Below, one piece after another: positions 17,883 through 64,000 of a stretch of 64,000 nt of DNA (within the stretch, counting starts at the first letter, position 1; each line of letters starts with the position of its first letter). Source of the stretch: Diplonema japonicum (lineage: Eukaryota; Protista; Euglenozoa: Diplonemea). The notes under the pieces were generated by a model. The model worked only from the letters and a program-made list of their open reading frames with translations, ran no database searches and was not told the DNA's origin. The translations under genes and the position numbers were made by a program. The DNA lies in contig OZ025693.1 of NCBI GenBank assembly GCA_964019335.1, positions 477,486-541,485 of the forward strand. Direction: 5' to 3'.

Positions 17883-17929
17883 AGAGGCGCAGGCACGCAG
17901 AACACGAACGACCAATAAAGTACAGAAAC

Positions 17930-18580
17930 TGTAGCTTTAGAATCGTTGGTGGCCGTTTCCTTGTATCCCGCTCGGGAGGAGGATGTCCGCTGGCTTTGCA
18001 CTTTTTTCCCAACTTTAAAAAACCAAGAGGTTGCTTTATTTCTCGTGCGGGTTTGCGGGTTTGCGGGTTGAGGAAGGGGGGGTGGGGGCCCAGGGGCCAC
18101 GGGAAGGGGGATTTTTTCTGGGGGGAAAAAGTTTTTTTTCCCCGTTTCGACTTCGGGTGGTTCAACTTTTTCCCCCTTTTCAAACCGAAATGGCCTGCAT
18201 ACCACCGTGGGTTTTCCACTTTGGGGAAAATTTTTATGAGGGGTTTTTTGGTGATCATAGAGGGGTTAGACGAAATGTTATCAAAATTTCTGTACTTGGA
18301 AAAAAAAATTTTTTTTTCCACTCTGCCCATGCCCCTTAAGGGAAATTTTTGTACTTATAAAATATTTTTCTTTCCTAGAAAAAGATTTTTGTACTTAGAA
18401 AAGGAAATTCTTTTTCTTCCTTCTTTTTTTTTTTTTTTCCCCAATTTTAAAAAACCAAGTGATTGCTTTATTTCTCGTGCGGGTTTGTGTAGCTTTAGAA
18501 TCGTTGGTGGCTAACAAAATCTTTTTTAAAAAGAGAATGAAAAATAAAAAAGGGGGGTGCTCATTTCTCGTGCGGGTTGC
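17930..18580 (+). repeat. Non-coding element with internal direct repeats
   Basis: tgtagctttagaatcgttggtggc at ~17930 and ~18488; tttctcgtgcgggtt at ~18039, ~18471 and ~18565; aaaaaaccaag...ttgctttatt twice. Confidence 0.7.
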
Positions 18581-23183: not shown

Positions 23184-26100
23184 CTACTTTTCATAGTTAG
23201 GTCGAAGGGATGCGACCTTCCCAATACGCTTCTTCCATGAGGCGATACGCGTCTTTGCCTCCTGGGGAGCACTTGGGAGGGATGCCTTCCTTGATATCCT
23301 TTTTAGCGTTTCGGTTTCCTCAGGTTTGAGGTACTCCAAGGAGGCAAGTGCTGCCTTGATACTTTCGTAGACTTCGTCTGCCTCTACTGCAAGGTCGCTG
23401 GGAATGAGTTGCAAGATAAGGTGTGTCTTTGTCTTGGCGGTCACGAGGTGACGCCCCACTTCATCTACAACAGTCTCCGTCAGCTCCGCGTCGACCTTCT
23501 GTTTGCTCTCCACGATCACGACATCGTCTGTCTGGCACCGCATGTCCTTTACGGGCTTCGTCTTCCCGCTTGCCTCTTCCATCAGGCCCTTCATCAGCGC
23601 GTTCAGCTCATTAGGGTCGACTGACAAATTTGCAAACGATTCGTCTGGATCCAACCCTGCCGCGATGCGCTGCTTCCTCCTCTCGATCTTTTTCTTCCTC
23701 AACAGCAGCTCTCTTGCCATCGCTTCCAGCTGCCTCACAAAAACCCCTGATACATCTGCATCCTTCTCCCGCGCATCGCTGTCCCTCCGCATTCTCAACT
23801 CCGCCACCACGTCAGTCAGTTCCTCCAGCCGCCTCTTCAGCTTTCTCACATTCTGTATCGACACCTCGTCCTCCTCGACAAGCATGTCCGCTCCCTCGAG
23901 GTGCGCGATCCTTTTCAACAACATGTCATTTTCCTCTTCCAAGTCCCGCACCCGCTCCCCTGCCTGAGCCACACTGCGGAATACCAACTCCTCTGCCTCG
24001 TCGAATGCCTTCACCATCTCTTCCAGCTCTGCTGCCTTATCTCTGTACCTGTGTTTGATATCCGTGTATTTCGTCTTCAGCATCTCCAGATCCAGCACAA
24101 CCTTCCCGCTGTCGTCCCTGAAACTCTCGTTGCTCAGTAGATCGAAGCTTCTTGCCTTCCGTTCATCCTGCGCAGGCACGTACGTCTTACCCTCGACAGG
24201 AGGCTCAGGTTCTTGCTCAGAAGATATGTCATCTTTGCTTACATCTAGTGCGCTGATGGGTTCGCTGCCTGTCATCGGTTCACCATGCTCGGCTTCATCA
24301 GCACCGCTGTGTGCCTTGTGTTCTTGATGAGCTGCCTTTGTTAACACAGAGCTTTCTTCAGGCTGTGTGGGCGTCAACTGGCTTTCGCCCACCAACATGC
24401 TTCGGAATTCATTCAGCAGTTCATTCAGACCAGTCACCTCATTTTTGTCAACAGCCCCCTGTACCTCTGTCAACTTTTCGACTAAGCTGCTGCACTTCAC
24501 GGTATCTGTTTCAACCTGCTTGCTTCGCATCATCATCTCTTCTTGCACAAAGAGTCTTACCTTTCGGTCTGCTACCTCAGTGACTTGCACGGTATCCTCG
24601 GAGGCTGTTCCACATGACAGCGATGCCTCCTTCACGAGGAGCTTGACACCTGCAACGTTGTGTTCAGTTGCTTTGACACCCTTCAAAAGCCCTACGTCAC
24701 TTTCTTGATTGCGATGCTCTACATCATATCCTTCTGTGTGCAAATCATCTCCTTGAGATTCTTCTAATGCTTGTTGCGTGCGCAATATGTCTTCAAACTC
24801 GTTCAGCAGCATCCTCAGCTCCTTCATTGCAGGTGTACTTTTCCCGTTCAATGTATCTTGCACTTCCTCCAGTTTCTCTACCAAGTAATCATATTTCGGG
24901 ATTTCTTTTTCATTTGCAATGCAAACACTTCTTTCACTCAACTGCGGAGCATTTCCTCGTACACTGCTAGATGGGGTAGCTGGAGTATTGGGGAAGGTTG
25001 CAAGGGATGCTTCCGACGTTCGCAACAAATGCCCTGCAGATGCTGCGAGACCTGCTTTAAGATTGCCAGCAGGTGTAGCACTCTCCAACCAATGCGGTGT
25101 CAACTCCACAGGTCTGGCACGCTGCAGGAGGGCATCACACCTCGACAGGAGAGGCTGCAGGTCGACTGTGTCTTGGTGTTTTGCTTCAGAATTCAGTTTT
25201 TCAAGATCTTCAATGAGACTGCTCATATTCGGCTCAAGCGGGTCGACAAGCTGCGCCGTGTGTTGCAGTGGTAATTGCAGACTGGTGAACAGCTCTTGCG
25301 ACGTTTCGTGCAGCACAGGCACCGCAGCCATCTGCACGGGCACCACAAGGAGTCGTGATACTTCGTGCAGTTCGGCACTTTGTTCCTGATGGGACCCATC
25401 GACGTGTTGTTTTGCTTCAGGTTGGGTCTTTGCGCTAGATGTGCGTGCATATGTTTCACAAAGCTGCGTCGGGTGCTTGCTCTCAAACTGCACGACGTCC
25501 TGTGCCCATGCCCCCTCGTGACCAAGAAGCTCCAACACACGTGGGTGGCAAGGTGTCTCCAAGAACTCCGAAAACTCAACGAGTACACACTCGGAGGTCC
25601 CCTTGTCCTGGTTTTGATGCTCAGAATACACTTCAGTTTCATGCAACTGCGCGTTCTCCAGCTCGATGGTTGTCGGTTTCTCAGATGTGCTGCCTGTGTT
25701 TCGAGTCTCAACTTGTGTGGCTCGTGACTCCGTGTGCAGTGGTAGCTGCTCCAACAAAGATTGATGCGTTTGAGCCAACGCAAGGACTTCTTTCCATGAA
25801 GGTGGTAGGGAATACAACTTGCTTTCGGTTTCAAAAAGAAGAGGAGCCTGTTCAATATCATGCAACTCCTTGACATCAAGACCACCAGCCTCCTTCACGG
25901 GTGACACATCCACAAACTCCTCGCGCAGCAGCACCTCCTCCTTCGCGAAGAGCTCGGTTTGTGGAGCACTTCGACAGCTGGTGTCTTGCGGAATGTCTGA
26001 TTCGGTGTAACTACAGTGCTCCGTGCCTTCCTGCTCGTACAACGCCACCTTAAACTCAGTCTCTTCTTGTGTGCTGTGGCTCTTGGTGACGGGCTTTTGT

Positions 26101-29100
26101 CCTTCAGTCTGCTTCCTCGCCACACCGCCACCCGGAGTCTCATTCTTCACTGGGGTCGCCGACACCACTTCTCTTACTTGAAGAACGGTGTCCTGTCCAA
26201 CACTCGGAGTTTGTGTTGCTACTCCTCCCGTAACGTAAAGCTCCCCTCGCAGCTCGTCAGTAGAAGGTGGAAAAGAGAACAGCTGCTGTTCAGCTTCAAA
26301 CAGAACAGGAACACAGTGTTCGACACTTTGTTCCTGATGGGACCCATCGACGTGTTGTTTTGCTTCGGGTTGGGTCTTTGCGCTAGATGTGCGTGCATAT
26401 GTTTCGAAAAGCTGCGTCGGGTGCTTGCTCTCAAACTGCACGACGTCCTGTGTCCATGCCCCCTCGTGACCAAGAAGCTCCAACACACGTGGGTGGCAAG
26501 GTGTCTCCAAGAACTCCGAAAGCTCAACGAGTACACACTCGGAGGTCCCTTTGTCCTGGTTTTGATGCCCAGGATAAATTTCAGTTTCATGCAACTGCGC
26601 GTTCAACTGCTGCTGGTTGTTCTCCCCTTTACTACTGTCACCAGATGATACTTCTGCAACTGGGGTCGCCGACACCACTTCTCTTACTTGAAGAACAGTG
26701 TCCTGTCTAACACTCGGAGTTTGTGCTACTCCTCCAGCAACGCAAAGCCCCCCTCGCAGCTCGTCAGAAGAAGGTGGAAGAGAGAACAGCTGCTGTTCAG
26801 CTTCAAACAGAACAGGAACACATTGTTCGACACTTTGTTTCTGATGGGACCCATCGACGTGTTGTTTTGCTTCGGGTTGGGTCTTTGCGCTAGATGCGTG
26901 TACATATGTTTCGAAAAGCTGTGTCGGGTGCTTGCTCTCAAACGGCACGACATCCCGTGTCCATGCCCCCTCGTGACCAAGAAGCTCCAACACACGTGGG
27001 TGGCAAGGTGTCTCCAAGAACTCCGAAAGCTCAACGAGTACACACTCGGAGGTCCCCTTGTCCTGGTTTTGATGCTCATGATACAACTCAGTTTCATGCT
27101 GCTGGTCGTTTTCCCTTTTACTACTGTCGCCATATGATATTTCTGTCAAAGGCAGTTCAGTTGTGAAGCCTCCAGGTTTTTCGGGTGTTCTGTTCATGTT
27201 TTGAGTCTTAACCTGTATAGTTCGTGTCTCCGTGTGCAGTGGTAGCTGCTCCACCAAAGATTGATGCGTTTGAGCCAACGCAAGGACCTCTTTCCATGAA
27301 GGTGGTAGGGAACACAACTGGTTTTCCGTCTCAAAAAGAAGAGGAGCATATTCGAAAACATGTAACTCCCTGTCGTACTCCTCCAGCAGGACGGTCGCGG
27401 GCCTTCTTTGCTCCTCCAAGACGGTCGCGGTCCTCGGCTCCTCCTCCTGCTCCTTCTTCTCGCCCGCGGCTGCTAGTGCTGCGAGGGTCTCGAAGCGCTC
27501 CTCCAAGACGGTCGCAGACCTTTGCGCCTCGCGTGCCGCGAGTGCCGCGTAGCCCTCCCGCAGCTTCTCCACCTCTTCCGCCTGCGGGACGACGGCCTCC
27601 GAGCTCTCCTGCAGGGTCCTTTCCTCGGGCTTCTTTGCCTTTTCTTCTGGCTCGTCGCTCGACACCGGCACCGACGGGGCGACTTCTTCTGCTGCCCTCG
27701 AGACGAAGGCTTCATGCACCTCCAGGACGACCACGACGGCCTTCTTCGCCGTTTCTCCGCTCTTTTTCGCGTCCTTCGCAGCTTCAGCCTCAGCCTCAGC
27801 CTCAGCCTCAGCCTCTGCGTCGCTCGTCGTCGTGCTCGTGCTTGTGCTCGAAGCCTCTTCCCTTTCTTCTCCCGAGGCCTTTGCCCTTGCCTCTGCCTGC
27901 TTGTCCTCCGCAGCTTCTTCCAGCCTTGCCCTCAGCTCCCTCACCTCCTCCTGCAGCTTTGCGACTTCTGCCGCGGTAAGGCCCGGCTGCGGCTGCTGTG
28001 ATGCTGATGCTGATGCTGCTGACGCGGTCAGCAACAGCTCCTCGGCCTCGACAAGCTCCAAATCCCGCGGTGTGGGTGTGTGTGTAGGCGTGGGTGTGTC
28101 CTCCCCCTGAAGCGCCGCACAGCGCTCCTCCGCTTCCCGCTGCGTTGCGAGGGCAGCGTGCTCCGCTTCGACCGCTTTTCGGAGGTTCACAGAGGCGTTC
28201 TCCACGCGCTCCTTTGCACGCTCCAAGCGAGCTCCCGCTTCGTCCTCTGTCTGCGCCTCCTCCTCGTCTTCCTCGGACGAAGCAAGGAGCACCATCGGCT
28301 CTGCCGTCGCCTGTCTTGTTGCGAGGGTCTCGGAGCGCTCCTCCAGCAGGACGGTCGCGGGCCTTCTTTGCTCCTCCAAGACGGTCGCGGTCCTCGGCTC
28401 CTCCTCCTGCTCCTTCTTCTCGCCCGCGGCTGCTAGTGCTGCGAGGGTCTCGAAGCGCTCCTCCAAGACGGTCGCAGACCTTTGCGCCTCGCGTGCCGCG
28501 AGTGCCGCGTAGCCCTCCCGCAGCTTCTCCACCTCTTCCGCCTGCGGGACGACGGCCTCCGAGCTCTCCTGCAGGGTCCTTTCCTCGGGCTTCTTTGCCT
28601 TTTCTTCTGGCTCGTCGCTCGACACCGGCACCGACGGGGCGACTTCTTCTGCTGCCCTCGAGACGAAGGCTTCATGCACCTCCAGGACGACCACGACGGC
28701 CTTCTTCGCCGTTTCTCCGCTCTTTTTCGCGTCCTTCGCAGCTTCAGCCTCAGCCTCAGCCTCAGCCTCAGCCTCAGCCTCTGCGTCGCTCGTCGTCGTG
28801 CTCGTGCTTGTGCTCGAAGCCTCTTCCCTTTCTTCTCCCGAGGCCTTTGCCCTTGCCTCTGCCTGCTTGTCCTCCGCAGCTTCTTCCAGCCTTGCCCTCA
28901 GCTCCCTCACCTCCTCCTGCAGCTTTGCGACTTCTGCCGCGGTAAGGCCCGGCTGCGGCTGCTGTGATGCTGATGCTGATGCTGCTGACGCGGTCAGCAA
29001 CAGCTCCTCGGCCTCGACAAGCTCCAAATCCCGCGGTGTGGGTGTGTGTGTAGGCGTGGGTGTGTCCTCCCCCTGAAGCGCCGCACAGCGCTCCTCCGCT

Positions 29101-32100
29101 TCCCGCTGCGTTGCGAGGGCAGCGTGCTCCGCTTCGACCGCTTTTCGGAGGTTCACAGAGGCGTTCTCCACGCGCTCCTTTGCACGCTCCAAGCGAGCTC
29201 CCGCTTCGTCCTCTGTCTGCGCCTCCTCCTCGTCTTCCTCGGACGAAGCAAGGAGCACCATCGGCTCTGCCGTCGCCTGTCTTGTTGCGAGGGTCTCGGA
29301 GCGCTCCTCCAGCAGGACGGTCGCGGGCCTTCTTTGCTCCTCCAAGACGGTCGCGGTCCTCGGCTCCTCCTCCTGCTCCTTCTTCTCGCCCGCGGCTGCT
29401 AGTGCTGCGAGGGTCTCGAAGCGCTCCTCCAAGACGGTCGCAGACCTTTGCGCCTCGCGTGCCGCGAGTGCCGCGTAGCCCTCCCGCAGCTTCTCCACCT
29501 CTTCCGCCTGCGGGACGACGGCCTCCGAGCTCTCCTGCAGGGTCCTTTCCTCGGGCTTCTTTGCCTTTTCTTCTGGCTCGTCGCTCGACACCGGCACCGA
29601 CGGGGCGACTTCTTCTGCTGCCCTCGAGACGAAGGCTTCATGCACCTCCAGGACGACCACGACGGCCTTCTTCGCCGTTTCTCCGCTCTTTTTCGCGTCC
29701 TTCGCAGCTTCAGCCTCAGCCTCAGCCTCAGCCTCAGCCTCTGCGTCGCTCGTCGTCGTGCTCGTGCTTGTGCTCGAAGCCTCTTCCCTTTCTTCTCCCG
29801 AGGCCTTTGCCCTTGCCTCTGCCTGCTTGTCCTCCGCAGCTTCTTCCAGCCTTGCCCTCAGCTCCCTCACCTCCTCCTGCAGCTTTGCGACTTCTGCCGC
29901 GGTAAGGCCCGGCTGCGGCTGCTGTGATGCTGATGCTGATGCTGCTGACGCGGTCAGCAACAGCTCCTCGGCCTCGACAAGCTCCAAATCCCGCGGTGTG
30001 GGTGTGTGTGTAGGCGTGGGTGTGTCCTCCCCCTGAAGCGCCGCACAGCGCTCCTCCGCTTCCCGCTGCGTTGCGAGGGCAGCGTGCTCCGCTTCGACCG
30101 CTTTTCGGAGGTTCACAGAGGCGTTCTCCACGCGCTCCTTTGCACGCTCCAAGCGAGCTCCCGCTTCGTCCTCTGTCTGCGCCTCCTCCTCGTCTTCCTC
30201 GGACGAAGCAAGGAGCACCATCGGCTCTGCCGTCGCCTGTCTTGTTGCGAGGGTCTCGGAGCGCTCCTCCAGCAGGACGGTCGCGGGCCTTCTTTGCTCC
30301 TCCAAGACGGTCGCGGTCCTCGGCTCCTCCTCCTGCTCCTTCTTCTCGCCCGCGGCTGCTAGTGCTGCGAGGGTCTCGAAGCGCTCCTCCAAGACGGTCG
30401 CAGACCTTTGCGCCTCGCGTGCCGCGAGTGCCGCGTAGCCCTCCCGCAGCTTCTCCACCTCTTCCGCCTGCGGGACGACGGCCTCCGAGCTCTCCTGCAG
30501 GGTCCTTTCCTCGGGCTTCTTTGCCTTTTCTTCTGGCTCGTCGCTCGACACCGGCACCGACGGGGCGACTTCTTCTGCTGCCCTCGAGACGAAGGCTTCA
30601 TGCACCTCCAGGACGACCACGACGGCCTTCTTCGCCGTTTCTCCGCTCTTTTTCGCGTCCTTCGCAGCTTCAGCCTCAGCCTCAGCCTCAGCCTCAGCCT
30701 CTGCGTCGCTCGTCGTCGTGCTCGTGCTTGTGCTCGAAGCCTCTTCCCTTTCTTCTCCCGAGGCCTTTGCCCTTGCCTCTGCCTGCTTGTCCTCCGCAGC
30801 TTCTTCCAGCCTTGCCCTCAGCTCCCTCACCTCCTCCTGCAGCTTTGCGACTTCTGCCGCGGTAAGGCCCGGCTGCGGCTGCTGTGATGCTGATGCTGAT
30901 GCTGCTGACGCGGTCAGCAACAGCTCCTCGGCCTCGACAAGCTCCAAATCCCGCGGTGTGGGTGTGTGTGTAGGCGTGGGTGTGTCCTCCCCCTGAAGCG
31001 CCGCACAGCGCTCCTCCGCTTCCCGCTGCGTTGCGAGGGCAGCGTGCTCCGCTTCGACCGCTTTTCGGAGGTTCACAGAGGCGTTCTCCACGCGCTCCTT
31101 TGCACGCTCCAAGCGAGCTCCCGCTTCGTCCTCTGTCTGCGCCTCCTCCTCGTCTTCCTCGGACGAAGCAAGGAGCACCATCGGCTCTGCCGTCGCCTGT
31201 CTTGTTGCGAGGGTCTCGGAGCGCTCCTCCAGCAGGACGGTCGCGGGCCTTCTTTGCTCCTCCAAGACGGTCGCGGTCCTCGGCTCCTCCTCCTGCTCCT
31301 TCTTCTCGCCCGCGGCTGCTAGTGCTGCGAGGGTCTCGAAGCGCTCCTCCAAGACGGTCGCAGACCTTTGCGCCTCGCGTGCCGCGAGTGCCGCGTAGCC
31401 CTCCCGCAGCTTCTCCACCTCTTCCGCCTGCGGGACGACGGCCTCCGAGCTCTCCTGCAGGGTCCTTTCCTCGGGCTTCTTTGCCTTTTCTTCTGGCTCG
31501 TCGCTCGACACCGGCACCGACGGGGCGACTTCTTCTGCTGCCCTCGAGACGAAGGCTTCATGCACCTCCAGGACGACCACGACGGCCTTCTTCGCCGTTT
31601 CTCCGCTCTTTTTCGCGTCCTTCGCAGCTTCAGCCTCAGCCTCAGCCTCAGCCTCAGCCTCAGCCTCTGCGTCGCTCGTCGTCGTGCTCGTGCTTGTGCT
31701 CGAAGCCTCTTCCCTTTCTTCTCCCGAGGCCTTTGCCCTTGCCTCTGCCTGCTTGTCCTCCGCAGCTTCTTCCAGCCTTGCCCTCAGCTCCCTCACCTCC
31801 TCCTGCAGCTTTGCGACTTCTGCCGCGGTAAGGCCCGGCTGCGGCTGCTGTGATGCTGATGCTGATGCTGCTGACGCGGTCAGCAACAGCTCCTCGGCCT
31901 CGACAAGCTCCAAATCCCGCGGTGTGGGTGTGTGTGTAGGCGTGGGTGTGTCCTCCCCCTGAAGCGCCGCACAGCGCTCCTCCGCTTCCCGCTGCGTTGC
32001 GAGGGCAGCGTGCTCCGCTTCGACCGCTTTTCGGAGGTTCACAGAGGCGTTCTCCACGCGCTCCTTTGCACGCTCCAAGCGAGCTCCCGCTTCGTCCTCT

Positions 32101-35100
32101 GTCTGCGCCTCCTCCTCGTCTTCCTCGGACGAAGCAAGGAGCACCATCGGCTCTGCCGTCGCCTGTCTTGTTGCGAGGGTCTCGGAGCGCTCCTCCAGCA
32201 GGACGGTCGCGGGCCTTCTTTGCTCCTCCAAGACGGTCGCGGTCCTCGGCTCCTCCTCCTGCTCCTTCTTCTCGCCCGCGGCTGCTAGTGCTGCGAGGGT
32301 CTCGAAGCGCTCCTCCAAGACGGTCGCAGACCTTTGCGCCTCGCGTGCCGCGAGTGCCGCGTAGCCCTCCCGCAGCTTCTCCACCTCTTCCGCCTGCGGG
32401 ACGACGGCCTCCGAGCTCTCCTGCAGGGTCCTTTCCTCGGGCTTCTTTGCCTTTTCTTCTGGCTCGTCGCTCGACACCGGCACCGACGGGGCGACTTCTT
32501 CTGCTGCCCTCGAGACGAAGGCTTCATGCACCTCCAGGACGACCACGACGGCCTTCTTCGCCGTTTCTCCGCTCTTTTTCGCGTCCTTCGCAGCTTCAGC
32601 CTCAGCCTCAGCCTCAGCCTCAGCCTCAGCCTCTGCGTCGCTCGTCGTCGTGCTCGTGCTTGTGCTCGAAGCCTCTTCCCTTTCTTCTCCCGAGGCCTTT
32701 GCCCTTGCCTCTGCCTGCTTGTCCTCCGCAGCTTCTTCCAGCCTTGCCCTCAGCTCCCTCACCTCCTCCTGCAGCTTTGCGACTTCTGCCGCGGTAAGGC
32801 CCGGCTGCGGCTGCTGTGATGCTGATGCTGATGCTGCTGACGCGGTCAGCAACAGCTCCTCGGCCTCGACAAGCTCCAAATCCCGCGGTGTGGGTGTGTG
32901 TGTAGGCGTGGGTGTGTCCTCCCCCTGAAGCGCCGCACAGCGCTCCTCCGCTTCCCGCTGCGTTGCGAGGGCAGCGTGCTCCGCTTCGACCGCTTTTCGG
33001 AGGTTCACAGAGGCGTTCTCCACGCGCTCCTTTGCACGCTCCAAGCGAGCTCCCGCTTCGTCCTCTGTCTGCGCCTCCTCCTCGTCTTCCTCGGACGAAG
33101 CAAGGAGCACCATCGGCTCTGCCGTCGCCTGTCTTGTTGCGAGGGTCTCGGAGCGCTCCTCCAGCAGGACGGTCGCGGGCCTTCTTTGCTCCTCCAAGAC
33201 GGTCGCGGTCCTCGGCTCCTCCTCCTGCTCCTTCTTCTCGCCCGCGGCTGCTAGTGCTGCGAGGGTCTCGAAGCGCTCCTCCAAGACGGTCGCAGACCTT
33301 TGCGCCTCGCGTGCCGCGAGTGCCGCGTAGCCCTCCCGCAGCTTCTCCACCTCTTCCGCCTGCGGGACGACGGCCTCCGAGCTCTCCTGCAGGGTCCTTT
33401 CCTCGGGCTTCTTTGCCTTTTCTTCTGGCTCGTCGCTCGACACCGGCACCGACGGGGCGACTTCTTCTGCTGCCCTCGAGACGAAGGCTTCATGCACCTC
33501 CAGGACGACCACGACGGCCTTCTTCGCCGTTTCTCCGCTCTTTTTCGCGTCCTTCGCAGCTTCAGCCTCAGCCTCAGCCTCAGCCTCAGCCTCTGCGTCG
33601 CTCGTCGTCGTGCTCGTGCTTGTGCTCGAAGCCTCTTCCCTTTCTTCTCCCGAGGCCTTTGCCCTTGCCTCTGCCTGCTTGTCCTCCGCAGCTTCTTCCA
33701 GCCTTGCCCTCAGCTCCCTCACCTCCTCCTGCAGCTTTGCGACTTCTGCCGCGGTAAGGCCCGGCTGCGGCTGCTGTGATGCTGATGCTGATGCTGCTGA
33801 CGCGGTCAGCAACAGCTCCTCGGCCTCGACAAGCTCCAAATCCCGCGGTGTGGGTGTGTGTGTAGGCGTGGGTGTGTCCTCCCCCTGAAGCGCCGCACAG
33901 CGCTCCTCCGCTTCCCGCTGCGTTGCGAGGGCAGCGTGCTCCGCTTCGACCGCTTTTCGGAGGTTCACAGAGGCGTTCTCCACGCGCTCCTTTGCACGCT
34001 CCAAGCGAGCTCCCGCTTCGTCCTCTGTCTGCGCCTCCTCCTCGTCTTCCTCGGACGAAGCAAGGAGCACCATCGGCTCTGCCGTCGCCTGTCTTGTTGC
34101 GAGGGTCTCGGAGCGCTCCTCCAGCAGGACGGTCGCGGGCCTTCTTTGCTCCTCCAAGACGGTCGCGGTCCTCGGCTCCTCCTCCTGCTCCTTCTTCTCG
34201 CCCGCGGCTGCTAGTGCTGCGAGGGTCTCGAAGCGCTCCTCCAAGACGGTCGCAGACCTTTGCGCCTCGCGTGCCGCGAGTGCCGCGTAGCCCTCCCGCA
34301 GCTTCTCCACCTCTTCCGCCTGCGGGACGACGGCCTCCGAGCTCTCCTGCAGGGTCCTTTCCTCGGGCTTCTTTGCCTTTTCTTCTGGCTCGTCGCTCGA
34401 CACCGGCACCGACGGGGCGACTTCTTCTGCTGCCCTCGAGACGAAGGCTTCATGCACCTCCAGGACGACCACGACGGCCTTCTTCGCCGTTTCTCCGCTC
34501 TTTTTCGCGTCCTTCGCAGCTTCAGCCTCAGCCTCAGCCTCAGCCTCAGCCTCTGCGTCGCTCGTCGTCGTGCTCGTGCTTGTGCTCGAAGCCTCTTCCC
34601 TTTCTTCTCCCGAGGCCTTTGCCCTTGCCTCTGCCTGCTTGTCCTCCGCAGCTTCTTCCAGCCTTGCCCTCAGCTCCCTCACCTCCTCCTGCAGCTTTGC
34701 GACTTCTGCCGCGGTAAGGCCCGGCTGCGGCTGCTGTGATGCTGATGCTGATGCTGCTGACGCGGTCAGCAACAGCTCCTCGGCCTCGACAAGCTCCAAA
34801 TCCCGCGGTGTGGGTGTGTGTGTAGGCGTGGGTGTGTCCTCCCCCTGAAGCGCCGCACAGCGCTCCTCCGCTTCCCGCTGCGTTGCGAGGGCAGCGTGCT
34901 CCGCTTCGACCGCTTTTCGGAGGTTCACAGAGGCGTTCTCCACGCGCTCCTTTGCACGCTCCAAGCGAGCTCCCGCTTCGTCCTCTGTCTGCGCCTCCTC
35001 CTCGTCTTCCTCGGACGAAGCAAGGAGCACCATCGGCTCTGCCGTCGCCTGTCTTGTTGCGAGGGTCTCGGAGCGCTCCTCCAGCAGGACGGTCGCGGGC

Positions 35101-53100: not shown

Positions 53101-56100
53101 CCCAACGCGCACGGTCTCCGCCGTCGATAGCAGGACCTCCTCTGCGGCGCGTCCGCGGAGCGCCTGCAGCTTCTCGCTGAGCTCTGCGTTTTCGCGCAGC
53201 AGTGCGTCCAGGTTCGGGGCGGGCGCCACCTTGTCCACCAGCTCCTCCACGATCTCCCGCACGAAGTTCTCGGGGCCCGTTTTCGGGGGGTCCTGTTCTT
53301 GTTCCCGAGGAAGAAGAGGCGCCGCAAAAGGAAGACGGTTAAGGTTGCTCTCCAAGACCACGCACTTCGCCTCCGCTTCCACGACCGCGGCCTTCAGGTC
53401 CTCCCAGGCCATCCCCTCGAGCTCCACCGCGCGCTGCTCCCCGGGCGTAGGGAGGTACTCAACCTCGACACCGCAGGTTTGCGCTCGCTCCCCCTCGGCT
53501 GCGCGCACCTCCTCGTCCACAAGGGACTGCAGCTCCTGCGAGGACGCGGTTAGTTGTTGTTTTGGATCCCTTCTCCCAACGCGCACGGTCTCCGCCGTCG
53601 ATAGCAGGACCTCCTCTGCGGCGCGTCCGCGGAGCGCCTGCAGCTTCTCGCTGAGCTCTGCGTTTTCGCGCAGCAGTGCGTCCAGGTTCGGGGCGGGCGC
53701 CACCTTGTCCACCAGCTCCTCCACGATCTCCCGCACGAAGTTCTCGGGGCCCGTTTTCGGGGGGTCCTGTTCTTGTTCCCGAGGAAGAAGAGGCGCCGCA
53801 AAAGGAAGACGGTTAAGGTTGCTCTCCAAGACCACGCACTTCGCCTCCGCTTCCACGACCGCGGCCTTCAGGTCCTCCCAGGCCATCCCCTCGAGCTCCA
53901 CCGCGCGCTGCTCCCCGGGCGTAGGGAGGTACTCAACCTCGACACCGCAGGTTTGCGCTCGCTCCCCCTCGGCTGCGCGCACCTCCTCGTCCACAAGGGA
54001 CTGCAGCTCCTGCGAGGACGCGGTTAGTTGTTGTTTTGGATCCCTTCTCCCAACGCGCACGGTCTCCGCCGTCGATAGCAGGACCTCCTCTGCGGCGCGT
54101 CCGCGGAGCGCCTGCAGCTTCTCGCTGAGCTCTGCGTTTTCGCGCAGCAGTGCGTCCAGGTTCGGGGCGGGCGCCACCTTGTCCACCAGCTCCTCCACGA
54201 TCTCCCGCACGAAGTTCTCGGGGCCCGTTTTCGGGGGGTCCTGTTCTTGTTCCCGAGGAAGAAGAGGCGCCGCAAAAGGAAGACGGTTAAGGTTGCTCTC
54301 CAAGACCACGCACTTCGCCTCCGCTTCCACGACCGCGGCCTTCAGGTCCTCCCAGGCCATCCCCTCGAGCTCCACCGCGCGCTGCTCCCCGGGCGTAGGG
54401 AGGTACTCAACCTCGACACCGCAGGTTTGCGCTCGCTCCCCCTCGGCTGCGCGCACCTCCTCGTCCACAAGGGACTGCAGCTCCTGCGAGGACGCGGTTA
54501 GTTGTTGTTTTGGATCCCTTCTCCCAACGCGCACGGTCTCCGCCGTCGATAGCAGGACCTCCTCTGCGGCGCGTCCGCGGAGCGCCTGCAGCTTCTCGCT
54601 GAGCTCTGCGTTTTCGCGCAGCAGTGCGTCCAGGTTCGGGGCGGGCGCCACCTTGTCCACCAGCTCCTCCACGATCTCCCGCACGAAGTTCTCGGGGCCC
54701 GTTTTCGGGGGGTCCTGTTCTTGTTCCCGAGGAAGAAGAGGCGCCGCAAAAGGAAGACGGTTAAGGTTGCTCTCCAAGACCACGCACTTCGCCTCCGCTT
54801 CCACGACCGCGGCCTTCAGGTCCTCCCAGGCCATCCCCTCGAGCTCCACCGCGCGCTGCTCCCCGGGCGTAGGGAGGTACTCAACCTCGACACCGCAGGT
54901 TTGCGCTCGCTCCCCCTCGGCTGCGCGCACCTCCTCGTCCACAAGGGACTGCAGCTCCTGCGAGGACGCGGTTAGTTGTTGTTTTGGATCCCTTCTCCCA
55001 ACGCGCACGGTCTCCGCCGTCGATAGCAGGACCTCCTCTGCGGCGCGTCCGCGGAGCGCCTGCAGCTTCTCGCTGAGCTCTGCGTTTTCGCGCAGCAGTG
55101 CGTCCAGGTTCGGGGCGGGCGCCACCTTGTCCACCAGCTCCTCCACGATCTCCCGCACGAAGTTCTCGGGGCCCGTTTTCGGGGGGTCCTGTTCTTGTTC
55201 CCGAGGAAGAAGAGGCGCCGCAAAAGGAAGACGGTTAAGGTTGCTCTCCAAGACCACGCACTTCGCCTCCGCTTCCACGACCGCGGCCTTCAGGTCCTCC
55301 CAGGCCATCCCCTCGAGCTCCACCGCGCGCTGCTCCCCGGGCGTAGGGAGGTACTCAACCTCGACACCGCAGGTTTGCGCTCGCTCCCCCTCGGCTGCGC
55401 GCACCTCCTCGTCCACAAGGGACTGCAGCTCCTGCGAGGACGCGGTTAGTTGTTGTTTTGGATCCCTTCTCCCAACGCGCACGGTCTCCGCCGTCGATAG
55501 CAGGACCTCCTCTGCGGCGCGTCCGCGGAGCGCCTGCAGCTTCTCGCTGAGCTCTGCGTTTTCGCGCAGCAGTGCGTCCAGGTTCGGGGCGGGCGCCACC
55601 TTGTCCACCAGCTCCTCCACGATCTCCCGCACGAAGTTCTCGGGGCCCGTTTTCGGGGGGTCCTGTTCTTGTTCCCGAGGAAGAAGAGGCGCCGCAAAAG
55701 GAAGACGGTTAAGGTTGCTCTCCAAGACCACGCACTTCGCCTCCGCTTCCACGACCGCGGCCTTCAGGTCCTCCCAGGCCATCCCCTCGAGCTCCACCGC
55801 GCGCTGCTCCCCGGGCGTAGGGAGGTACTCAACCTCGACACCGCAGGTTTGCGCTCGCTCCCCCTCGGCTGCGCGCACCTCCTCGTCCACAAGGGACTGC
55901 AGCTCCTGCGAGGACGCGGTTAGTTGTTGTTTTGGATCCCTTCTCCCAACGCGCACGGTCTCCGCCGTCGATAGCAGGACCTCCTCTGCGGCGCGTCCGC
56001 GGAGCGCCTGCAGCTTCTCGCTGAGCTCTGCGTTTTCGCGCAGCAGTGCGTCCAGGTTCGGGGCGGGCGCCACCTTGTCCACCAGCTCCTCCACGATCTC

Positions 56101-59100
56101 CCGCACGAAGTTCTCGGGGCCCGTTTTCGGGGGGTCCTGTTCTTGTTCCCGAGGAAGAAGAGGCGCCGCAAAAGGAAGACGGTTAAGGTTGCTCTCCAAG
56201 ACCACGCACTTCGCCTCCGCTTCCACGACCGCGGCCTTCAGGTCCTCCCAGGCCATCCCCTCGAGCTCCACCGCGCGCTGCTCCCCGGGCGTAGGGAGGT
56301 ACTCAACCTCGACACCGCAGGTTTGCGCTCGCTCCCCCTCGGCTGCGCGCACCTCCTCGTCCACAAGGGACTGCAGCTCCTGCGAGGACGCGGTTAGTTG
56401 TTGTTTTGGATCCCTTCTCCCAACGCGCACGGTCTCCGCCGTCGATAGCAGGACCTCCTCTGCGGCGCGTCCGCGGAGCGCCTGCAGCTTCTCGCTGAGC
56501 TCTGCGTTTTCGCGCAGCAGTGCGTCCAGGTTCGGGGCGGGCGCCACCTTGTCCACCAGCTCCTCCACGATCTCCCGCACGAAGTTCTCGGGGCCCGTTT
56601 TCGGGGGGTCCTGTTCTTGTTCCCGAGGAAGAAGAGGCGCCGCAAAAGGAAGACGGTTAAGGTTGCTCTCCAAGACCACGCACTTCGCCTCCGCTTCCAC
56701 GACCGCGGCCTTCAGGTCCTCCCAGGCCATCCCCTCGAGCTCCACCGCGCGCTGCTCCCCGGGCGTAGGGAGGTACTCAACCTCGACACCGCAGGTTTGC
56801 GCTCGCTCCCCCTCGGCTGCGCGCACCTCCTCGTCCACAAGGGACTGCAGCTCCTGCGAGGACGCGGTTAGTTGTTGTTTTGGATCCCTTCTCCCAACGC
56901 GCACGGTCTCCGCCGTCGATAGCAGGACCTCCTCTGCGGCGCGTCCGCGGAGCGCCTGCAGCTTCTCGCTGAGCTCTGCGTTTTCGCGCAGCAGTGCGTC
57001 CAGGTTCGGGGCGGGCGCCACCTTGTCCACCAGCTCCTCCACGATCTCCCGCACGAAGTTCTCGGGGCCCGTTTTCGGGGGGTCCTGTTCTTGTTCCCGA
57101 GGAAGAAGAGGCGCCGCAAAAGGAAGACGGTTAAGGTTGCTCTCCAAGACCACGCACTTCGCCTCCGCTTCCACGACCGCGGCCTTCAGGTCCTCCCAGG
57201 CCATCCCCTCGAGCTCCACCGCGCGCTGCTCCCCGGGCGTAGGGAGGTACTCAACCTCGACACCGCAGGTTTGCGCTCGCTCCCCCTCGGCTGCGCGCAC
57301 CTCCTCGTCCACAAGGGACTGCAGCTCCTGCGAGGACGCGGTTAGTTGTTGTTTTGGATCCCTTCTCCCAACGCGCACGGTCTCCGCCGTCGATAGCAGG
57401 ACCTCCTCTGCGGCGCGTCCGCGGAGCGCCTGCAGCTTCTCGCTGAGCTCTGCGTTTTCGCGCAGCAGTGCGTCCAGGTTCGGGGCGGGCGCCACCTTGT
57501 CCACCAGCTCCTCCACGATCTCCCGCACGAAGTTCTCGGGGCCCGTTTTCGGGGGGTCCTGTTCTTGTTCCCGAGGAAGAAGAGGCGCCGCAAAAGGAAG
57601 ACGGTTAAGGTTGCTCTCCAAGACCACGCACTTCGCCTCCGCTTCCACGACCGCGGCCTTCAGGTCCTCCCAGGCCATCCCCTCGAGCTCCACCGCGCGC
57701 TGCTCCCCGGGCGTAGGGAGGTACTCAACCTCGACACCGCAGGTTTGCGCTCGCTCCCCCTCGGCTGCGCGCACCTCCTCGTCCACAAGGGACTGCAGCT
57801 CCTGCGAGGACGCGGTTAGTTGTTGTTTTGGATCCCTTCTCCCAACGCGCACGGTCTCCGCCGTCGATAGCAGGACCTCCTCTGCGGCGCGTCCGCGGAG
57901 CGCCTGCAGCTTCTCGCTGAGCTCTGCGTTTTCGCGCAGCAGTGCGTCCAGGTTCGGGGCGGGCGCCACCTTGTCCACCAGCTCCTCCACGATCTCCCGC
58001 ACGAAGTTCTCGGGGCCCGTTTTCGGGGGGTCCTGTTCTTGTTCCCGAGGAAGAAGAGGCGCCGCAAAAGGAAGACGGTTAAGGTTGCTCTCCAAGACCA
58101 CGCACTTCGCCTCCGCTTCCACGACCGCGGCCTTCAGGTCCTCCCAGGCCATCCCCTCGAGCTCCACCGCGCGCTGCTCCCCGGGCGTAGGGAGGTACTC
58201 AACCTCGACACCGCAGGTTTGCGCTCGCTCCCCCTCGGCTGCGCGCACCTCCTCGTCCACAAGGGACTGCAGCTCCTGCGAGGACGCGGTTAGTTGTTGT
58301 TTTGGATCCCTTCTCCCAACGCGCACGGTCTCCGCCGTCGATAGCAGGACCTCCTCTGCGGCGCGTCCGCGGAGCGCCTGCAGCTTCTCGCTGAGCTCTG
58401 CGTTTTCGCGCAGCAGTGCGTCCAGGTTCGGGGCGGGCGCCACCTTGTCCACCAGCTCCTCCACGATCTCCCGCACGAAGTTCTCGGGGCCCGTTTTCGG
58501 GGGGTCCTGTTCTTGTTCCCGAGGAAGAAGAGGCGCCGCAAAAGGAAGACGGTTAAGGTTGCTCTCCAAGACCACGCACTTCGCCTCCGCTTCCACGACC
58601 GCGGCCTTCAGGTCCTCCCAGGCCATCCCCTCGAGCTCCACCGCGCGCTGCTCCCCGGGCGTAGGGAGGTACTCAACCTCGACACCGCAGGTTTGCGCTC
58701 GCTCCCCCTCGGCTGCGCGCACCTCCTCGTCCACAAGGGACTGCAGCTCCTGCGAGGACGCGGTTAGTTGTTGTTTTGGATCCCTTCTCCCAACGCGCAC
58801 GGTCTCCGCCGTCGATAGCAGGACCTCCTCTGCGGCGCGTCCGCGGAGCGCCTGCAGCTTCTCGCTGAGCTCTGCGTTTTCGCGCAGCAGTGCGTCCAGG
58901 TTCGGGGCGGGCGCCACCTTGTCCACCAGCTCCTCCACGATCTCCCGCACGAAGTTCTCGGGGCCCGTTTTCGGGGGGTCCTGTTCTTGTTCCCGAGGAA
59001 GAAGAGGCGCCGCAAAAGGAAGACGGTTAAGGTTGCTCTCCAAGACCACGCACTTCGCCTCCGCTTCCACGACCGCGGCCTTCAGGTCCTCCCAGGCCAT

Positions 59101-62100
59101 CCCCTCGAGCTCCACCGCGCGCTGCTCCCCGGGCGTAGGGAGGTACTCAACCTCGACACCGCAGGTTTGCGCTCGCTCCCCCTCGGCTGCGCGCACCTCC
59201 TCGTCCACAAGGGACTGCAGCTCCTGCGAGGACGCGGTTAGTTGTTGTTTTGGATCCCTTCTCCCAACGCGCACGGTCTCCGCCGTCGATAGCAGGACCT
59301 CCTCTGCGGCGCGTCCGCGGAGCGCCTGCAGCTTCTCGCTGAGCTCTGCGTTTTCGCGCAGCAGTGCGTCCAGGTTCGGGGCGGGCGCCACCTTGTCCAC
59401 CAGCTCCTCCACGATCTCCCGCACGAAGTTCTCGGGGCCCGTTTTCGGGGGGTCCTGTTCTTGTTCCCGAGGAAGAAGAGGCGCCGCAAAAGGAAGACGG
59501 TTAAGGTTGCTCTCCAAGACCACGCACTTCGCCTCCGCTTCCACGACCGCGGCCTTCAGGTCCTCCCAGGCCATCCCCTCGAGCTCCACCGCGCGCTGCT
59601 CCCCGGGCGTAGGGAGGTACTCAACCTCGACACCGCAGGTTTGCGCTCGCTCCCCCTCGGCTGCGCGCACCTCCTCGTCCACAAGGGACTGCAGCTCCTG
59701 CGAGGACGCGGTTAGTTGTTGTTTTGGATCCCTTCTCCCAACGCGCACGGTCTCCGCCGTCGATAGCAGGACCTCCTCTGCGGCGCGTCCGCGGAGCGCC
59801 TGCAGCTTCTCGCTGAGCTCTGCGTTTTCGCGCAGCAGTGCGTCCAGGTTCGGGGCGGGCGCCACCTTGTCCACCAGCTCCTCCACGATCTCCCGCACGA
59901 AGTTCTCGGGGCCCGTTTTCGGGGGGTCCTGTTCTTGTTCCCGAGGAAGAAGAGGCGCCGCAAAAGGAAGACGGTTAAGGTTGCTCTCCAAGACCACGCA
60001 CTTCGCCTCCGCTTCCACGACCGCGGCCTTCAGGTCCTCCCAGGCCATCCCCTCGAGCTCCACCGCGCGCTGCTCCCCGGGCGTAGGGAGGTACTCAACC
60101 TCGACACCGCAGGTTTGCGCTCGCTCCCCCTCGGCTGCGCGCACCTCCTCGTCCACAAGGGACTGCAGCTCCTGCGAGGACGCGGTTAGTTGTTGTTTTG
60201 GATCCCTTCTCCCAACGCGCACGGTCTCCGCCGTCGATAGCAGGACCTCCTCTGCGGCGCGTCCGCGGAGCGCCTGCAGCTTCTCGCTGAGCTCTGCGTT
60301 TTCGCGCAGCAGTGCGTCCAGGTTCGGGGCGGGCGCCACCTTGTCCACCAGCTCCTCCACGATCTCCCGCACGAAGTTCTCGGGGCCCGTTTTCGGGGGG
60401 TCCTGTTCTTGTTCCCGAGGAAGAAGAGGCGCCGCAAAAGGAAGACGGTTAAGGTTGCTCTCCAAGACCACGCACTTCGCCTCCGCTTCCACGACCGCGG
60501 CCTTCAGGTCCTCCCAGGCCATCCCCTCGAGCTCCACCGCGCGCTGCTCCCCGGGCGTAGGGAGGTACTCAACCTCGACACCGCAGGTTTGCGCTCGCTC
60601 CCCCTCGGCTGCGCGCACCTCCTCGTCCACAAGGGACTGCAGCTCCTGCGAGGACGCGGTTAGTTGTTGTTTTGGATCCCTTCTCCCAACGCGCACGGTC
60701 TCCGCCGTCGATAGCAGGACCTCCTCTGCGGCGCGTCCGCGGAGCGCCTGCAGCTTCTCGCTGAGCTCTGCGTTTTCGCGCAGCAGTGCGTCCAGGTTCG
60801 GGGCGGGCGCCACCTTGTCCACCAGCTCCTCCACGATCTCCCGCACGAAGTTCTCGGGGCCCGTTTTCGGGGGGTCCTGTTCTTGTTCCCGAGGAAGAAG
60901 AGGCGCCGCAAAAGGAAGACGGTTAAGGTTGCTCTCCAAGACCACGCACTTCGCCTCCGCTTCCACGACCGCGGCCTTCAGGTCCTCCCAGGCCATCCCC
61001 TCGAGCTCCACCGCGCGCTGCTCCCCGGGCGTAGGGAGGTACTCAACCTCGACACCGCAGGTTTGCGCTCGCTCCCCCTCGGCTGCGCGCACCTCCTCGT
61101 CCACAAGGGACTGCAGCTCCTGCGAGGACGCGGTTAGTTGTTGTTTTGGATCCCTTCTCCCAACGCGCACGGTCTCCGCCGTCGATAGCAGGACCTCCTC
61201 TGCGGCGCGTCCGCGGAGCGCCTGCAGCTTCTCGCTGAGCTCTGCGTTTTCGCGCAGCAGTGCGTCCAGGTTCGGGGCGGGCGCCACCTTGTCCACCAGC
61301 TCCTCCACGATCTCCCGCACGAAGTTCTCGGGGCCCGTTTTCGGGGGGTCCTGTTCTTGTTCCCGAGGAAGAAGAGGCGCCGCAAAAGGAAGACGGTTAA
61401 GGTTGCTCTCCAAGACCACGCACTTCGCCTCCGCTTCCACGACCGCGGCCTTCAGGTCCTCCCAGGCCATCCCCTCGAGCTCCACCGCGCGCTGCTCCCC
61501 GGGCGTAGGGAGGTACTCAACCTCGACACCGCAGGTTTGCGCTCGCTCCCCCTCGGCTGCGCGCACCTCCTCGTCCACAAGGGACTGCAGCTCCTGCGAG
61601 GACGCGGTTAGTTGTTGTTTTGGATCCCTTCTCCCAACGCGCACGGTCTCCGCCGTCGATAGCAGGACCTCCTCTGCGGCGCGTCCGCGGAGCGCCTGCA
61701 GCTTCTCGCTGAGCTCTGCGTTTTCGCGCAGCAGTGCGTCCAGGTTCGGGGCGGGCGCCACCTTGTCCACCAGCTCCTCCACGATCTCCCGCACGAAGTT
61801 CTCGGGGCCCGTTTTCGGGGGGTCCTGTTCTTGTTCCCGAGGAAGAAGAGGCGCCGCAAAAGGAAGACGGTTAAGGTTGCTCTCCAAGACCACGCACTTC
61901 GCCTCCGCTTCCACGACCGCGGCCTTCAGGTCCTCCCAGGCCATCCCCTCGAGCTCCACCGCGCGCTGCTCCCCGGGCGTAGGGAGGTACTCAACCTCGA
62001 CACCGCAGGTTTGCGCTCGCTCCCCCTCGGCTGCGCGCACCTCCTCGTCCACAAGGGACTGCAGCTCCTGCGAGGACGCGGTTAGTTGTTGTTTTGGATC

Positions 62101-64000
62101 CCTTCTCCCAACGCGCACGGTCTCCGCCGTCGATAGCAGGACCTCCTCTGCGGCGCGTCCGCGGAGCGCCTGCAGCTTCTCGCTGAGCTCTGCGTTTTCG
62201 CGCAGCAGTGCGTCCAGGTTCGGGGCGGGCGCCACCTTGTCCACCAGCTCCTCCACGATCTCCCGCACGAAGTTCTCGGGGCCCGTTTTCGGGGGGTCCT
62301 GTTCTTGTTCCCGAGGAAGAAGAGGCGCCGCAAAAGGAAGACGGTTAAGGTTGCTCTCCAAGACCACGCACTTCGCCTCCGCTTCCACGACCGCGGCCTT
62401 CAGGTCCTCCCAGGCCATCCCCTCGAGCTCCACCGCGCGCTGCTCCCCGGGCGTAGGGAGGTACTCAACCTCGACACCGCAGGTTTGCGCTCGCTCCCCC
62501 TCGGCTGCGCGCACCTCCTCGTCCACAAGGGACTGCAGCTCCTGCGAGGACGCGGTTAGTTGTTGTTTTGGATCCCTTCTCCCAACGCGCACGGTCTCCG
62601 CCGTCGATAGCAGGACCTCCTCTGCGGCGCGTCCGCGGAGCGCCTGCAGCTTCTCGCTGAGCTCTGCGTTTTCGCGCAGCAGTGCGTCCAGGTTCGGGGC
62701 GGGCGCCACCTTGTCCACCAGCTCCTCCACGATCTCCCGCACGAAGTTCTCGGGGCCCGTTTTCGGGGGGTCCTGTTCTTGTTCCCGAGGAAGAAGAGGC
62801 GCCGCAAAAGGAAGACGGTTAAGGTTGCTCTCCAAGACCACGCACTTCGCCTCCGCTTCCACGACCGCGGCCTTCAGGTCCTCCCAGGCCATCCCCTCGA
62901 GCTCCACCGCGCGCTGCTCCCCGGGCGTAGGGAGGTACTCAACCTCGACACCGCAGGTTTGCGCTCGCTCCCCCTCGGCTGCGCGCACCTCCTCGTCCAC
63001 AAGGGACTGCAGCTCCTGCGAGGACGCGGTTAGTTGTTGTTTTGGATCCCTTCTCCCAACGCGCACGGTCTCCGCCGTCGATAGCAGGACCTCCTCTGCG
63101 GCGCGTCCGCGGAGCGCCTGCAGCTTCTCGCTGAGCTCTGCGTTTTCGCGCAGCAGTGCGTCCAGGTTCGGGGCGGGCGCCACCTTGTCCACCAGCTCCT
63201 CCACGATCTCCCGCACGAAGTTCTCGGGGCCCGTTTTCGGGGGGTCCTGTTCTTGTTCCCGAGGAAGAAGAGGCGCCGCAAAAGGAAGACGGTTAAGGTT
63301 GCTCTCCAAGACCACGCACTTCGCCTCCGCTTCCACGACCGCGGCCTTCAGGTCCTCCCAGGCCATCCCCTCGAGCTCCACCGCGCGCTGCTCCCCGGGC
63401 GTAGGGAGGTACTCAACCTCGACACCGCAGGTTTGCGCTCGCTCCCCCTCGGCTGCGCGCACCTCCTCGTCCACAAGGGACTGCAGCTCCTGCGAGGACG
63501 CGGTTAGTTGTTGTTTTGGATCCCTTCTCCCAACGCGCACGGTCTCCGCCGTCGATAGCAGGACCTCCTCTGCGGCGCGTCCGCGGAGCGCCTGCAGCTT
63601 CTCGCTGAGCTCTGCGTTTTCGCGCAGCAGTGCGTCCAGGTTCGGGGCGGGCGCCACCTTGTCCACCAGCTCCTCCACGATCTCCCGCACGAAGTTCTCG
63701 GGGCCCGTTTTCGGGGGGTCCTGTTCTTGTTCCCGAGGAAGAAGAGGCGCCGCAAAAGGAAGACGGTTAAGGTTGCTCTCCAAGACCACGCACTTCGCCT
63801 CCGCTTCCACGACCGCGGCCTTCAGGTCCTCCCAGGCCATCCCCTCGAGCTCCACCGCGCGCTGCTCCCCGGGCGTAGGGAGGTACTCAACCTCGACACC
63901 GCAGGTTTGCGCTCGCTCCCCCTCGGCTGCGCGCACCTCCTCGTCCACAAGGGACTGCAGCTCCTGCGAGGACGCGGTTAGTTGTTGTTTTGGATCCCTT
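23184..64000 (-). CDS. Giant acidic, repeat/coiled-coil protein, about 13,590 aa within the window (5'-partial); exons >64000-50191 and 50147-23184
   Basis: The 4605-aa and 8980-aa ORFs are separated by 4 nt. An AT-rich GT-AG intron joins them in frame (..QYLAGVS|VTRQDKVMKDTET..). There are no stops in 27 kb and 13.8 kb, and all indels between repeat units are multiples of 6 nt. Confidence 0.85.
24924..26315 (-). repeat. 1392-bp (464-aa) intragenic duplication, copy 2 in coding order; copy 1 at 47052-48443
   Basis: Constant offset of 22128 bp and identical shadow ORFs (for example 25223..25885 and 47351..48013). Confidence 0.95.
26316..27350 (-). repeat. Diverged partial repeats of sub-modules of the 1392-bp block
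   Basis: HQNQDKGTSECVLVE.SEFLETPCHPRVLELLGHEGAW...HVDGSHQ occurs twice more here, about 507 bp apart, with substitutions. Confidence 0.9.
27378..45500 (-). repeat. Coding tandem array B: 19 units (last one slightly incomplete) of 960 bp (variants 966 and 936 bp)
   Basis: A shadow 92-aa ORF recurs 19 times (27832 to 45088) with spacings of 960, 966 or 936. The visible differences are in the (GCCTCA)n = (AE)n tract. Confidence 0.98.
47052..48443 (-). repeat. 1392-bp intragenic duplication, copy 1 in coding order
   Basis: The peptide CVPVLFEAEQQLFSFPP...APQLSERSV occurs twice, on either side of array B. Confidence 0.95.
50148..50190 (-). other. 43-nt intron (or 49 nt using the alternative in-frame GTAAGT donor at 50196) in the giant gene
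   Basis: Minus strand gga GTAAGT GTATGTttaagtaacaatataaaaaactttaaatataaaaCAG gta acg. Both lengths are 3n+1, exactly the offset between the two ORF frames; GTATG matches most other introns in the window. Confidence 0.8.
50202..64000 (-). repeat. Coding tandem array A: at least 29 units of 474 bp (158 aa), continuing off the window
   Basis: Shadow ORFs recur every 474 bp with identical translations from 50232 to 63981. Confidence 0.98.

Follow-up and report, generated by a model that had tools for sequence, protein, structure and literature searches.

In a 64,000-nucleotide stretch of the Diplonema japonicum genome (GenBank assembly GCA_964019335.1, contig OZ025693.1, positions 477,486 to 541,485; hereafter the window), two huge open reading frames (ORFs) follow one another on the minus strand. 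The best explanation, and one that we consider probable, is that the two frames belong to a single gene and are joined by an intron of only 43 nucleotides (nt). Such a gene would encode an orphan, acidic repeat protein of about 1.55 MDa. We favor one gene with an intron because the putative intron fits a GTATG class found elsewhere in the genome, because such a combination of features arises in only 0.6% of shuffled sequences, because the junction lacks a pyrimidine tract and places the two frames 4 nt apart, and because the DNA of the junction is reproduced in other data.

In the gene model that we propose, a spliced leader (SL) acceptor, consisting of a pyrimidine tract and an AG at about 15730-15828, would precede the ATG at 15845 on the plus strand. 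The mRNA would encode a head of 291 amino acids (aa) followed by about 31 identical 158-aa units, which we call repeat A. This array would be split in the assembly between 16718-17682 (plus strand) and 64000-50202 (minus strand) because the terminal piece, 17883-64000, appears to be inverted. The cis-spliceosome would remove a phase-0 intron, GTATG...ACAG, at 50190-50148, and exon 2 (50147-23187) would supply a centre of about 1,550 aa, 19 units of a second repeat (repeat B) flanked by a duplicated 464-aa module (module C), and a tail of 579 aa. The parts of the gene, in window coordinates, are as follows.

15730-15828, plus strand: pyrimidine-rich tract and ACAG, the putative SL acceptor of the giant gene (richest 20-nt pyrimidine content 0.95 and richest T content 0.80, among the highest of 34 candidate gene starts)
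15845-16717, plus strand: exon 1, N-terminal head, 291 aa, 29% S/T, without a signal peptide or transmembrane-like segment; in frame with repeat A and single copy in the genome
16718-17682, plus strand: exon 1, first 2.04 repeat A units (158 aa each), cut by the gap; 100% complementary to all units of the 50202-64000 array
17683-17882, no strand: 200-N scaffold gap; 17883-64000, which follows it, very probably has the wrong orientation
50191-64000, minus strand: exon 1 continued, 29.1 repeat A units and the last codons, ...YLAGVS (Tandem Repeats Finder period 474, 99% identity)
50148-50190, minus strand: putative 43-nt phase-0 cis-intron, GTATGT...AAAACAG, proposed from the sequence on the basis of frame fusion, the 29-48 nt GTATG class, a shuffle probability of 0.006 and the lack of a pyrimidine tract
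45492-50147, minus strand: exon 2, centre of about 1,550 aa, for the most part unique, including module C copy 1 (47052-48443); single copy in the genome
27363-45491, minus strand: exon 2, array of 19 repeat B units (312, 320 or 322 aa) whose linkers are of the (AE)n, TPTPTHTPTP and S/T types
24924-27386, minus strand: exon 2, a diverged module C (26274-27386) and module C copy 2 (24924-26315, 464 aa), delimited by local blastp
23184-24923, minus strand: exon 2, unique C-terminal tail, 579 aa, with the stop at 23184-23186; AlphaFold2 predicts two long helices

The modelled coding parts amount to 1838 + 13,810 + 26,961 nt, or 14,203 codons, plus the content of the gap. With 31 repeat A units, the product computed from the joined exons would have about 14,176 aa and a mass of 1.55 MDa.

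The junction between the two long frames

As the first-pass annotation of this DNA had reported, the window holds minus-strand ORFs of 4605 aa (50131-63948) and 8980 aa (23184-50126), with the stop of the one just ahead of the start of the other; the TAA lies at 50131-50133 and the ATG at 50126, with 4 nt between them. The last 21 codons of the 4605-aa ORF, which read VSVCLSNNIKNFKYKTGNEAR and then the stop, are AT-rich, in agreement with the estimate of about 20 codons. Excision of 50190-50148 (43 nt, GTATGT...AAAACAG, phase 0, 53% A) fuses the frames such that ...QELQYLAGVS is directly followed by VTRQDKVMKDTE..., and we obtained the same total of about 13,590 aa (4603 + 8987 codons), before the start on the opposite strand is added. 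Translation through the 43-nt segment runs into a stop; its removal restores the long reading frame.

Frame fusion on its own is weak evidence for an intron, since some frame-fusing GT-AG pair is present in 43% of 50,000 shuffles of the 73-nt spacer. Only 0.6% of the same shuffles combine frame fusion with a GTATG donor and a length of 29-48 nt. Two other excisions were considered at the junction. Removal of 49 nt from the GTAAGT at 50196 likewise fuses the frames, and is disfavored by the lack of enrichment for GTAAG donors described below; a 61-nt in-frame alternative, ending at the AG of ATAAG, is longer than the range of the class.

The GTATG class comes from a blind scan of 223 kb, made up of 20 loci of other contigs and the window's left part. 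The scan looked for the shortest stretch from GT to AG whose excision takes out a stop and brings together two open frames, each of 80 codons or more. GTATG makes up 1.2% of the GT sites in this sample. Frame-fusing candidates of 29-48 nt begin at 19 of 311 GTATG sites, compared with 313 of 25,888 GT sites overall (odds ratio 5.6, Fisher p ~1e-8), and at 1 of 263 GTAAG sites. The lengths of the candidates cluster between 29 and 48 nt, ACAG is their commonest 3' end, and their interiors are often A- or A/C-rich; a second example of 43 nt lies at position 5676 of another scanned locus (L005). At the junction we find GTATGT at 50190-50185, a length of 43 nt, an AAAACAG end and a restored frame. 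Judged by these sequence features, the segment fits the genome's own class of tiny GTATG cis-introns.

The pentanucleotide GTATG is likewise conserved at the 5' end of cis-introns in kinetoplastids (PMC11613528). The introns of PAP1, DBP2B and RBP resemble the candidates described here in this pentanucleotide, in their GT-AG borders and in their coexistence with SL trans-splicing. In contrast to them, the candidates are 29-48 nt long, apparently numerous, A- or A/C-rich inside and without an obvious pyrimidine tract. Only two or three genes in kinetoplastids contain introns (PMC11613528), and the introns of Diplonema papillatum are mostly hundreds of bases long (PMC10161547).

The window also contains an alpha-actinin-like gene (13374-15290, plus strand), with matches to two CH domains, a spectrin repeat and EF-hands. 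This gene is cut by two putative introns of 33 nt and the form GTATGCC...CAG, at 14966-14998 and 15114-15146, each of which carries an in-frame stop. The match to the EF-hand pair breaks off precisely where the ORF ends, at position 48 of the 67 in the profile, and the following exon reads ...SGSSMTFDEFVAVMTK....

As a rival reading, the junction could be an artefact of the assembly, arising either from an indel in a homopolymer or from a chimeric join of an unrelated array to the gene. The frames can be fused without any intron if a single A is deleted from the AAAAAA run at about 50166-50171, and not far away the scaffold contains at least one further error, in the orientation of the piece at the gap. 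In two public datasets from different studies, X4 and X6, contigs spanning the junction (X4 record 10, 48414-50220; X6 record 18, 48419-50236) match its DNA with 0 differences and no indel. Because two independent datasets reproduce the junction exactly, an artefact of the assembly is already largely refuted, and we consider it extremely improbable.

If the DNA is correct, the junction could instead mark the border between two mRNAs of one polycistron. The gene for the head and repeat A would then end at the TAA at 50131-50133, and the 8980-aa gene would begin at ATG 50126, its mRNA receiving the SL at the AG at 50148 or at another AG nearby. The genome has SL-type elements, so AG acceptors are in use for trans-splicing genome-wide, and ATG 50126 sits 21 nt after an AG. 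A separate start of this kind can be compared with other gene starts. We took the richest 20-nt pyrimidine window within 120 nt upstream of 34 candidate gene starts and found a median of 0.82, with 0.95 for ATG 15845. The value for ATG 50126 is 0.60, tied for the lowest of the 34, and the 20-nt segment that yields it lies in the coding repeat; inside the putative intron and spacer the value is 0.45. By this measure, no pyrimidine tract suited to an SL acceptor lies upstream of ATG 50126. Four of the ten low-pyrimidine starts carry GTATG just upstream and for that reason probably follow introns rather than being true starts.

The spacing of the two frames also argues against two mRNAs. A distance of 4 nt between stop and ATG leaves no room for a 3' untranslated region or a poly(A) site, which for the upstream mRNA would therefore fall within the downstream coding region. 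Moreover, with two mRNAs, the presence of a GTATG donor at a class-typical distance and in the right phase would be a coincidence, at the 0.6% level given above. Taken with these points, a pair of separate mRNAs seems unlikely to us.

Cis- and trans-splicing might also compete for one acceptor, making the 43-nt intron a decision point from which one locus yields several megadalton products. Splicing would give the protein of 14,200 aa; retention of the intron would give a protein of 4,900 aa, made up of the head and repeat A, that ends at a stop 15 nt beyond the intron; and if this AG also served as an SL acceptor, a separate protein of 8,980 aa would arise. We hold this to be quite unlikely; it would mean such competition in an organism that apparently separates cis- from trans-splicing by A-rich versus U-rich acceptor contexts.

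The single gene with a tiny intron that the first-pass annotation had proposed is well supported by indirect evidence: the fit to the intron class, the lack of a pyrimidine tract, the 4-nt spacing and the reproduced DNA, from which we infer that the 43 nt are removed from the mRNA.

The missing start and the orientation of the terminal piece

The gene had been described as still open at the edge of the window. What the first-pass annotation missed is that the start of the gene appears to lie within the window as well, at 15845-17682 on the opposite strand and behind the 200-N gap, which brings the total to about 14,200 codons. A comparison of one repeat A unit with the whole genome revealed a 100% identical, inverted copy at 16718-17682. 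The plus-strand ORF that begins at ATG 15845, the first ATG after a stop, encodes the 291-aa head and continues in frame into 2.04 repeat A units.

Several lines of evidence indicate that the piece at 17883-64000 is very probably inverted in the scaffold. Window position 64000 is the end of contig C46 and not merely the edge of the window. Repeat A, the head and the region after the junction are found nowhere else in the 62.5-Mb genome, and repeat A itself occurs only in the two places that flank or lie behind the gap (16718-17682 and 50202-64000). In addition, a contig of X4 connects repeat A with the reverse-complemented sequence of 16690-16719, the boundary with the head. The depth of X4 over repeat A (549 versus 18.6-20.2) corresponds to 27-30 units; the assembly holds 31.1.

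A further argument for the inversion comes from a repeated element just to the right of the gap.

17883-17990, minus strand: SL-bearing multi-copy element with a 19-nt kinetoplastid SL motif; not part of the gene, but informative about orientation

The reverse complement of 17913-17955 holds a 19-nt motif that several papers show within the kinetoplastid SL, and a second, partial copy of the element lies at about 18478-18515. Genome-wide, the element has at least 44 scored matches among 236 candidates. Its copies are almost always found no farther than about 11 kb from a contig end and have their SL sense facing outward: the first 11.1 kb of contigs hold 18 copies, every one of them on the minus strand; copies on the plus strand are 0.5-8.1 kb away from the ends of C3, C10, C11 and C15; and both ends of C75 and C104 carry the element. 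The copy on C46 lies 46 kb from the end and points inward. Flipping 17883-64000 would place this copy at the terminus facing outward, would join the two halves of the repeat A array, and would put the whole giant gene on the strand of its upstream neighbors. The family itself could consist of sub-telomeric SL RNA genes or of an SL-derived sub-telomeric repeat.

Two observations concern the sequence around the gap. An antisense ORF of 560 aa (16648-18330, minus strand) is an artefact; the antisense frame of repeat A is open, and the ORF crosses the 200-N gap. Between the two SL-like fragments, 18040-18470 is of low complexity, G-rich and T-rich, with GCGGGTTT repeats and runs of poly-G and poly-T; no canonical TTAGGG telomere repeat was seen in 18040-18470.

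Repeat arrays, coding status and likely function

The protein would be dominated by its two arrays, whose unit lengths are all multiples of 3 nt. The repeat A unit of 474 bp encodes 158 aa, and the 29 units of the main array are identical save for one base in the last. Units of repeat B measure 936, 960 or 966 nt, differ in length by multiples of 6 nt within the (AE)n tract, and include twelve identical units of 960 nt. The two copies of module C that flank the repeat B array are 100% identical, and X4 depth is doubled over copy 1, consistent with two copies in the genome. In three runs we also noticed joints at module C that go back 948 nt, which suggests a 948-nt tandem variant or a copy-number polymorphism. 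Both arrays (50202-64000 and 27363-45491) have about 65% GC, compared with about 47-50% for the gene's unique sequence, and the units within them are perfectly homogenised; these features are compatible with a very recent expansion or with GC-biased gene conversion.

The composition agrees with the E/A-rich, domainless protein described in the first-pass annotation. The protein is strongly acidic, with a net charge of about -14 per repeat A unit and about -38 per repeat B unit, and has no transmembrane-like segment (maximum KD19 1.23). AlphaFold2, which had been suggested for each unit, was run in single-sequence mode on two repeat A units and the tail. For the repeat A units, it predicts amphipathic helices and Pro-rich linkers at low confidence (pLDDT 48-50). 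For the tail, it predicts helices of 78 and 71 aa at pLDDT ~70, with low confidence for the rest (model pLDDT 48-50).

An array this uniform could be a non-coding satellite, or untranslated or unexpressed; only the 8980-aa ORF would then be real, and the head at 15845 would belong to a separate short or truncated gene. The DNA identity of 29 units and the open antisense frame speak for such an array, and we estimate from base composition that about 1 in 10 GC-rich units of 474 bp would have some open frame. There is also a precedent in D. papillatum, where tandem arrays adjacent to genes are missing from the mature mRNA (PMC10161547). The repeat-bounded genes of that species (PMC10161547, Fig. 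2) resemble our locus in that a long tandem array adjoins an expressed gene and confuses gene models. In D. papillatum, however, the array consists of copies of the 5' end of the adjoining gene and lies outside the mRNA; here, the unit is not a copy of the 5' end of the downstream gene, and the array, which bears no relation to what follows downstream, comes with a unique head and a start codon and with an in-frame putative intron.

Other features of repeat A likewise argue that it is coding. The length of its unit is a multiple of 3; its sole open sense frame is continuous with the 291 codons of the head, behind a strong leader-type acceptor; the other end of the array is linked to the 8980-aa frame by a class-typical phase-0 intron; and the helices and linkers of the low-confidence AlphaFold2 model are amphipathic and Pro-rich, respectively. 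We consider a non-coding array very unlikely.

In searches for relatives, no Pfam domain, including those of known repeat folds such as spectrin, Ig and FN3, reaches the cut-off on the protein, which gives only sub-threshold or repeat-inflated coiled-coil-like matches. The exons were searched separately, and the queries to the big databases were drawn from outside repeats A and B. With residues 1-1200 of exon 2, phmmer yielded one spurious match only among 1.84 billion representatives, an uncharacterised repeat protein of Penaeus chinensis. It was rejected as homology, as the match consists of one 45-aa motif at 40% identity multiplied by its 18 copies in the shrimp protein. Word-indexed searches with the N- and C-terminal regions and a PDB sequence search gave no match, and the ESM Atlas returned nothing usable, recognition being below its informative range.

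The first-pass annotation had proposed a filament, a ruler or an elastic scaffold. Such a reading remains an analogy in architecture, and homology to FAZ10 or any other cytoskeletal protein was not found in these searches, with repeats A and B outside the big-database queries. We find two arrays of near-identical repeats, a unique centre and ends, and no transmembrane helix, as in FAZ10. By this analogy, the product most likely belongs with the megadalton proteins of the trypanosomatid kind, structural and associated with the cytoskeleton.

FAZ10 has an N-terminus without motifs, two arrays of nearly identical repeats around a unique centre, and a C-terminal region, with no transmembrane helix (PMC5358337). 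Together with ClpGM6, FLAM3 and Ps3500, it shares with the protein proposed here a size in the megadalton range and a euglenozoan host (PMC5358337). Like the gene described here, FAZ10 is under-represented or mis-assembled in genome assemblies; it is annotated at 502 kDa and runs at ~2000 kDa on gels, a gap for which its authors suggest mis-assembled repeats and/or post-translational modification (PMC5358337). Unlike this group, our repeat units are 158 and 320 aa long, not 35 aa. The searches described above found no sequence similarity to it, and the AlphaFold2 models have, at low confidence, helices broken by linkers rather than a continuous coiled coil. The putative cis-intron is another difference, as trypanosomatid genes almost never have one.

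Several points weigh against a single spliced gene for a giant structural protein. Tandem arrays beside diplonemid genes can give over-long gene models (PMC10161547), and with units that are identical and an antisense frame of repeat A that is also open, the ORF alone is no proof of coding. The public sequencing runs behave as DNA, with flat depth and no spliced joint at 50148/50190, an absence that two separate mRNAs would also explain. None of them is recorded as RNA, and the two guessed to be RNA (X1 and X2) give no coverage of the junction. A search of ORFs called on public assemblies gave no match, not even to the gene itself; the organism's proteins are absent from the protein collection. 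The intron class is defined statistically on 223 kb rather than from transcripts, and Pfam gave no exon-by-exon confirmation for the two short alpha-actinin exons, which are too short to score. Finally, the proposed function rests by analogy on architecture, without support from homology.

Neighboring sequence and meaning of the locus

Upstream of the giant gene, three consecutive plus-strand ORFs (9078-12059, 12171-13262 and 13374-14975) are each exactly 111 nt apart; they may be closely packed individual genes or parts of one larger gene. No Pfam domain was found in the first two of them (9078-12059 and 12171-13262), and Rfam gave no match on 1-23200.

For annotation, the consequence is that three or more separate models, spread over both strands, would represent the gene until the end piece of C46 is turned around and the 43-nt intron is taken into account. 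With respect to cell biology, an orphan protein of 1.55 MDa with two perfectly homogenised arrays would be a promising candidate for an important structural component of a euglenozoan that has received little study, and its unique N- and C-terminal parts should make it easy to tag and to measure. For RNA processing, the junction would be a natural test case of how a tiny, A-rich cis-intron is recognized in a cell that trans-splices every mRNA.

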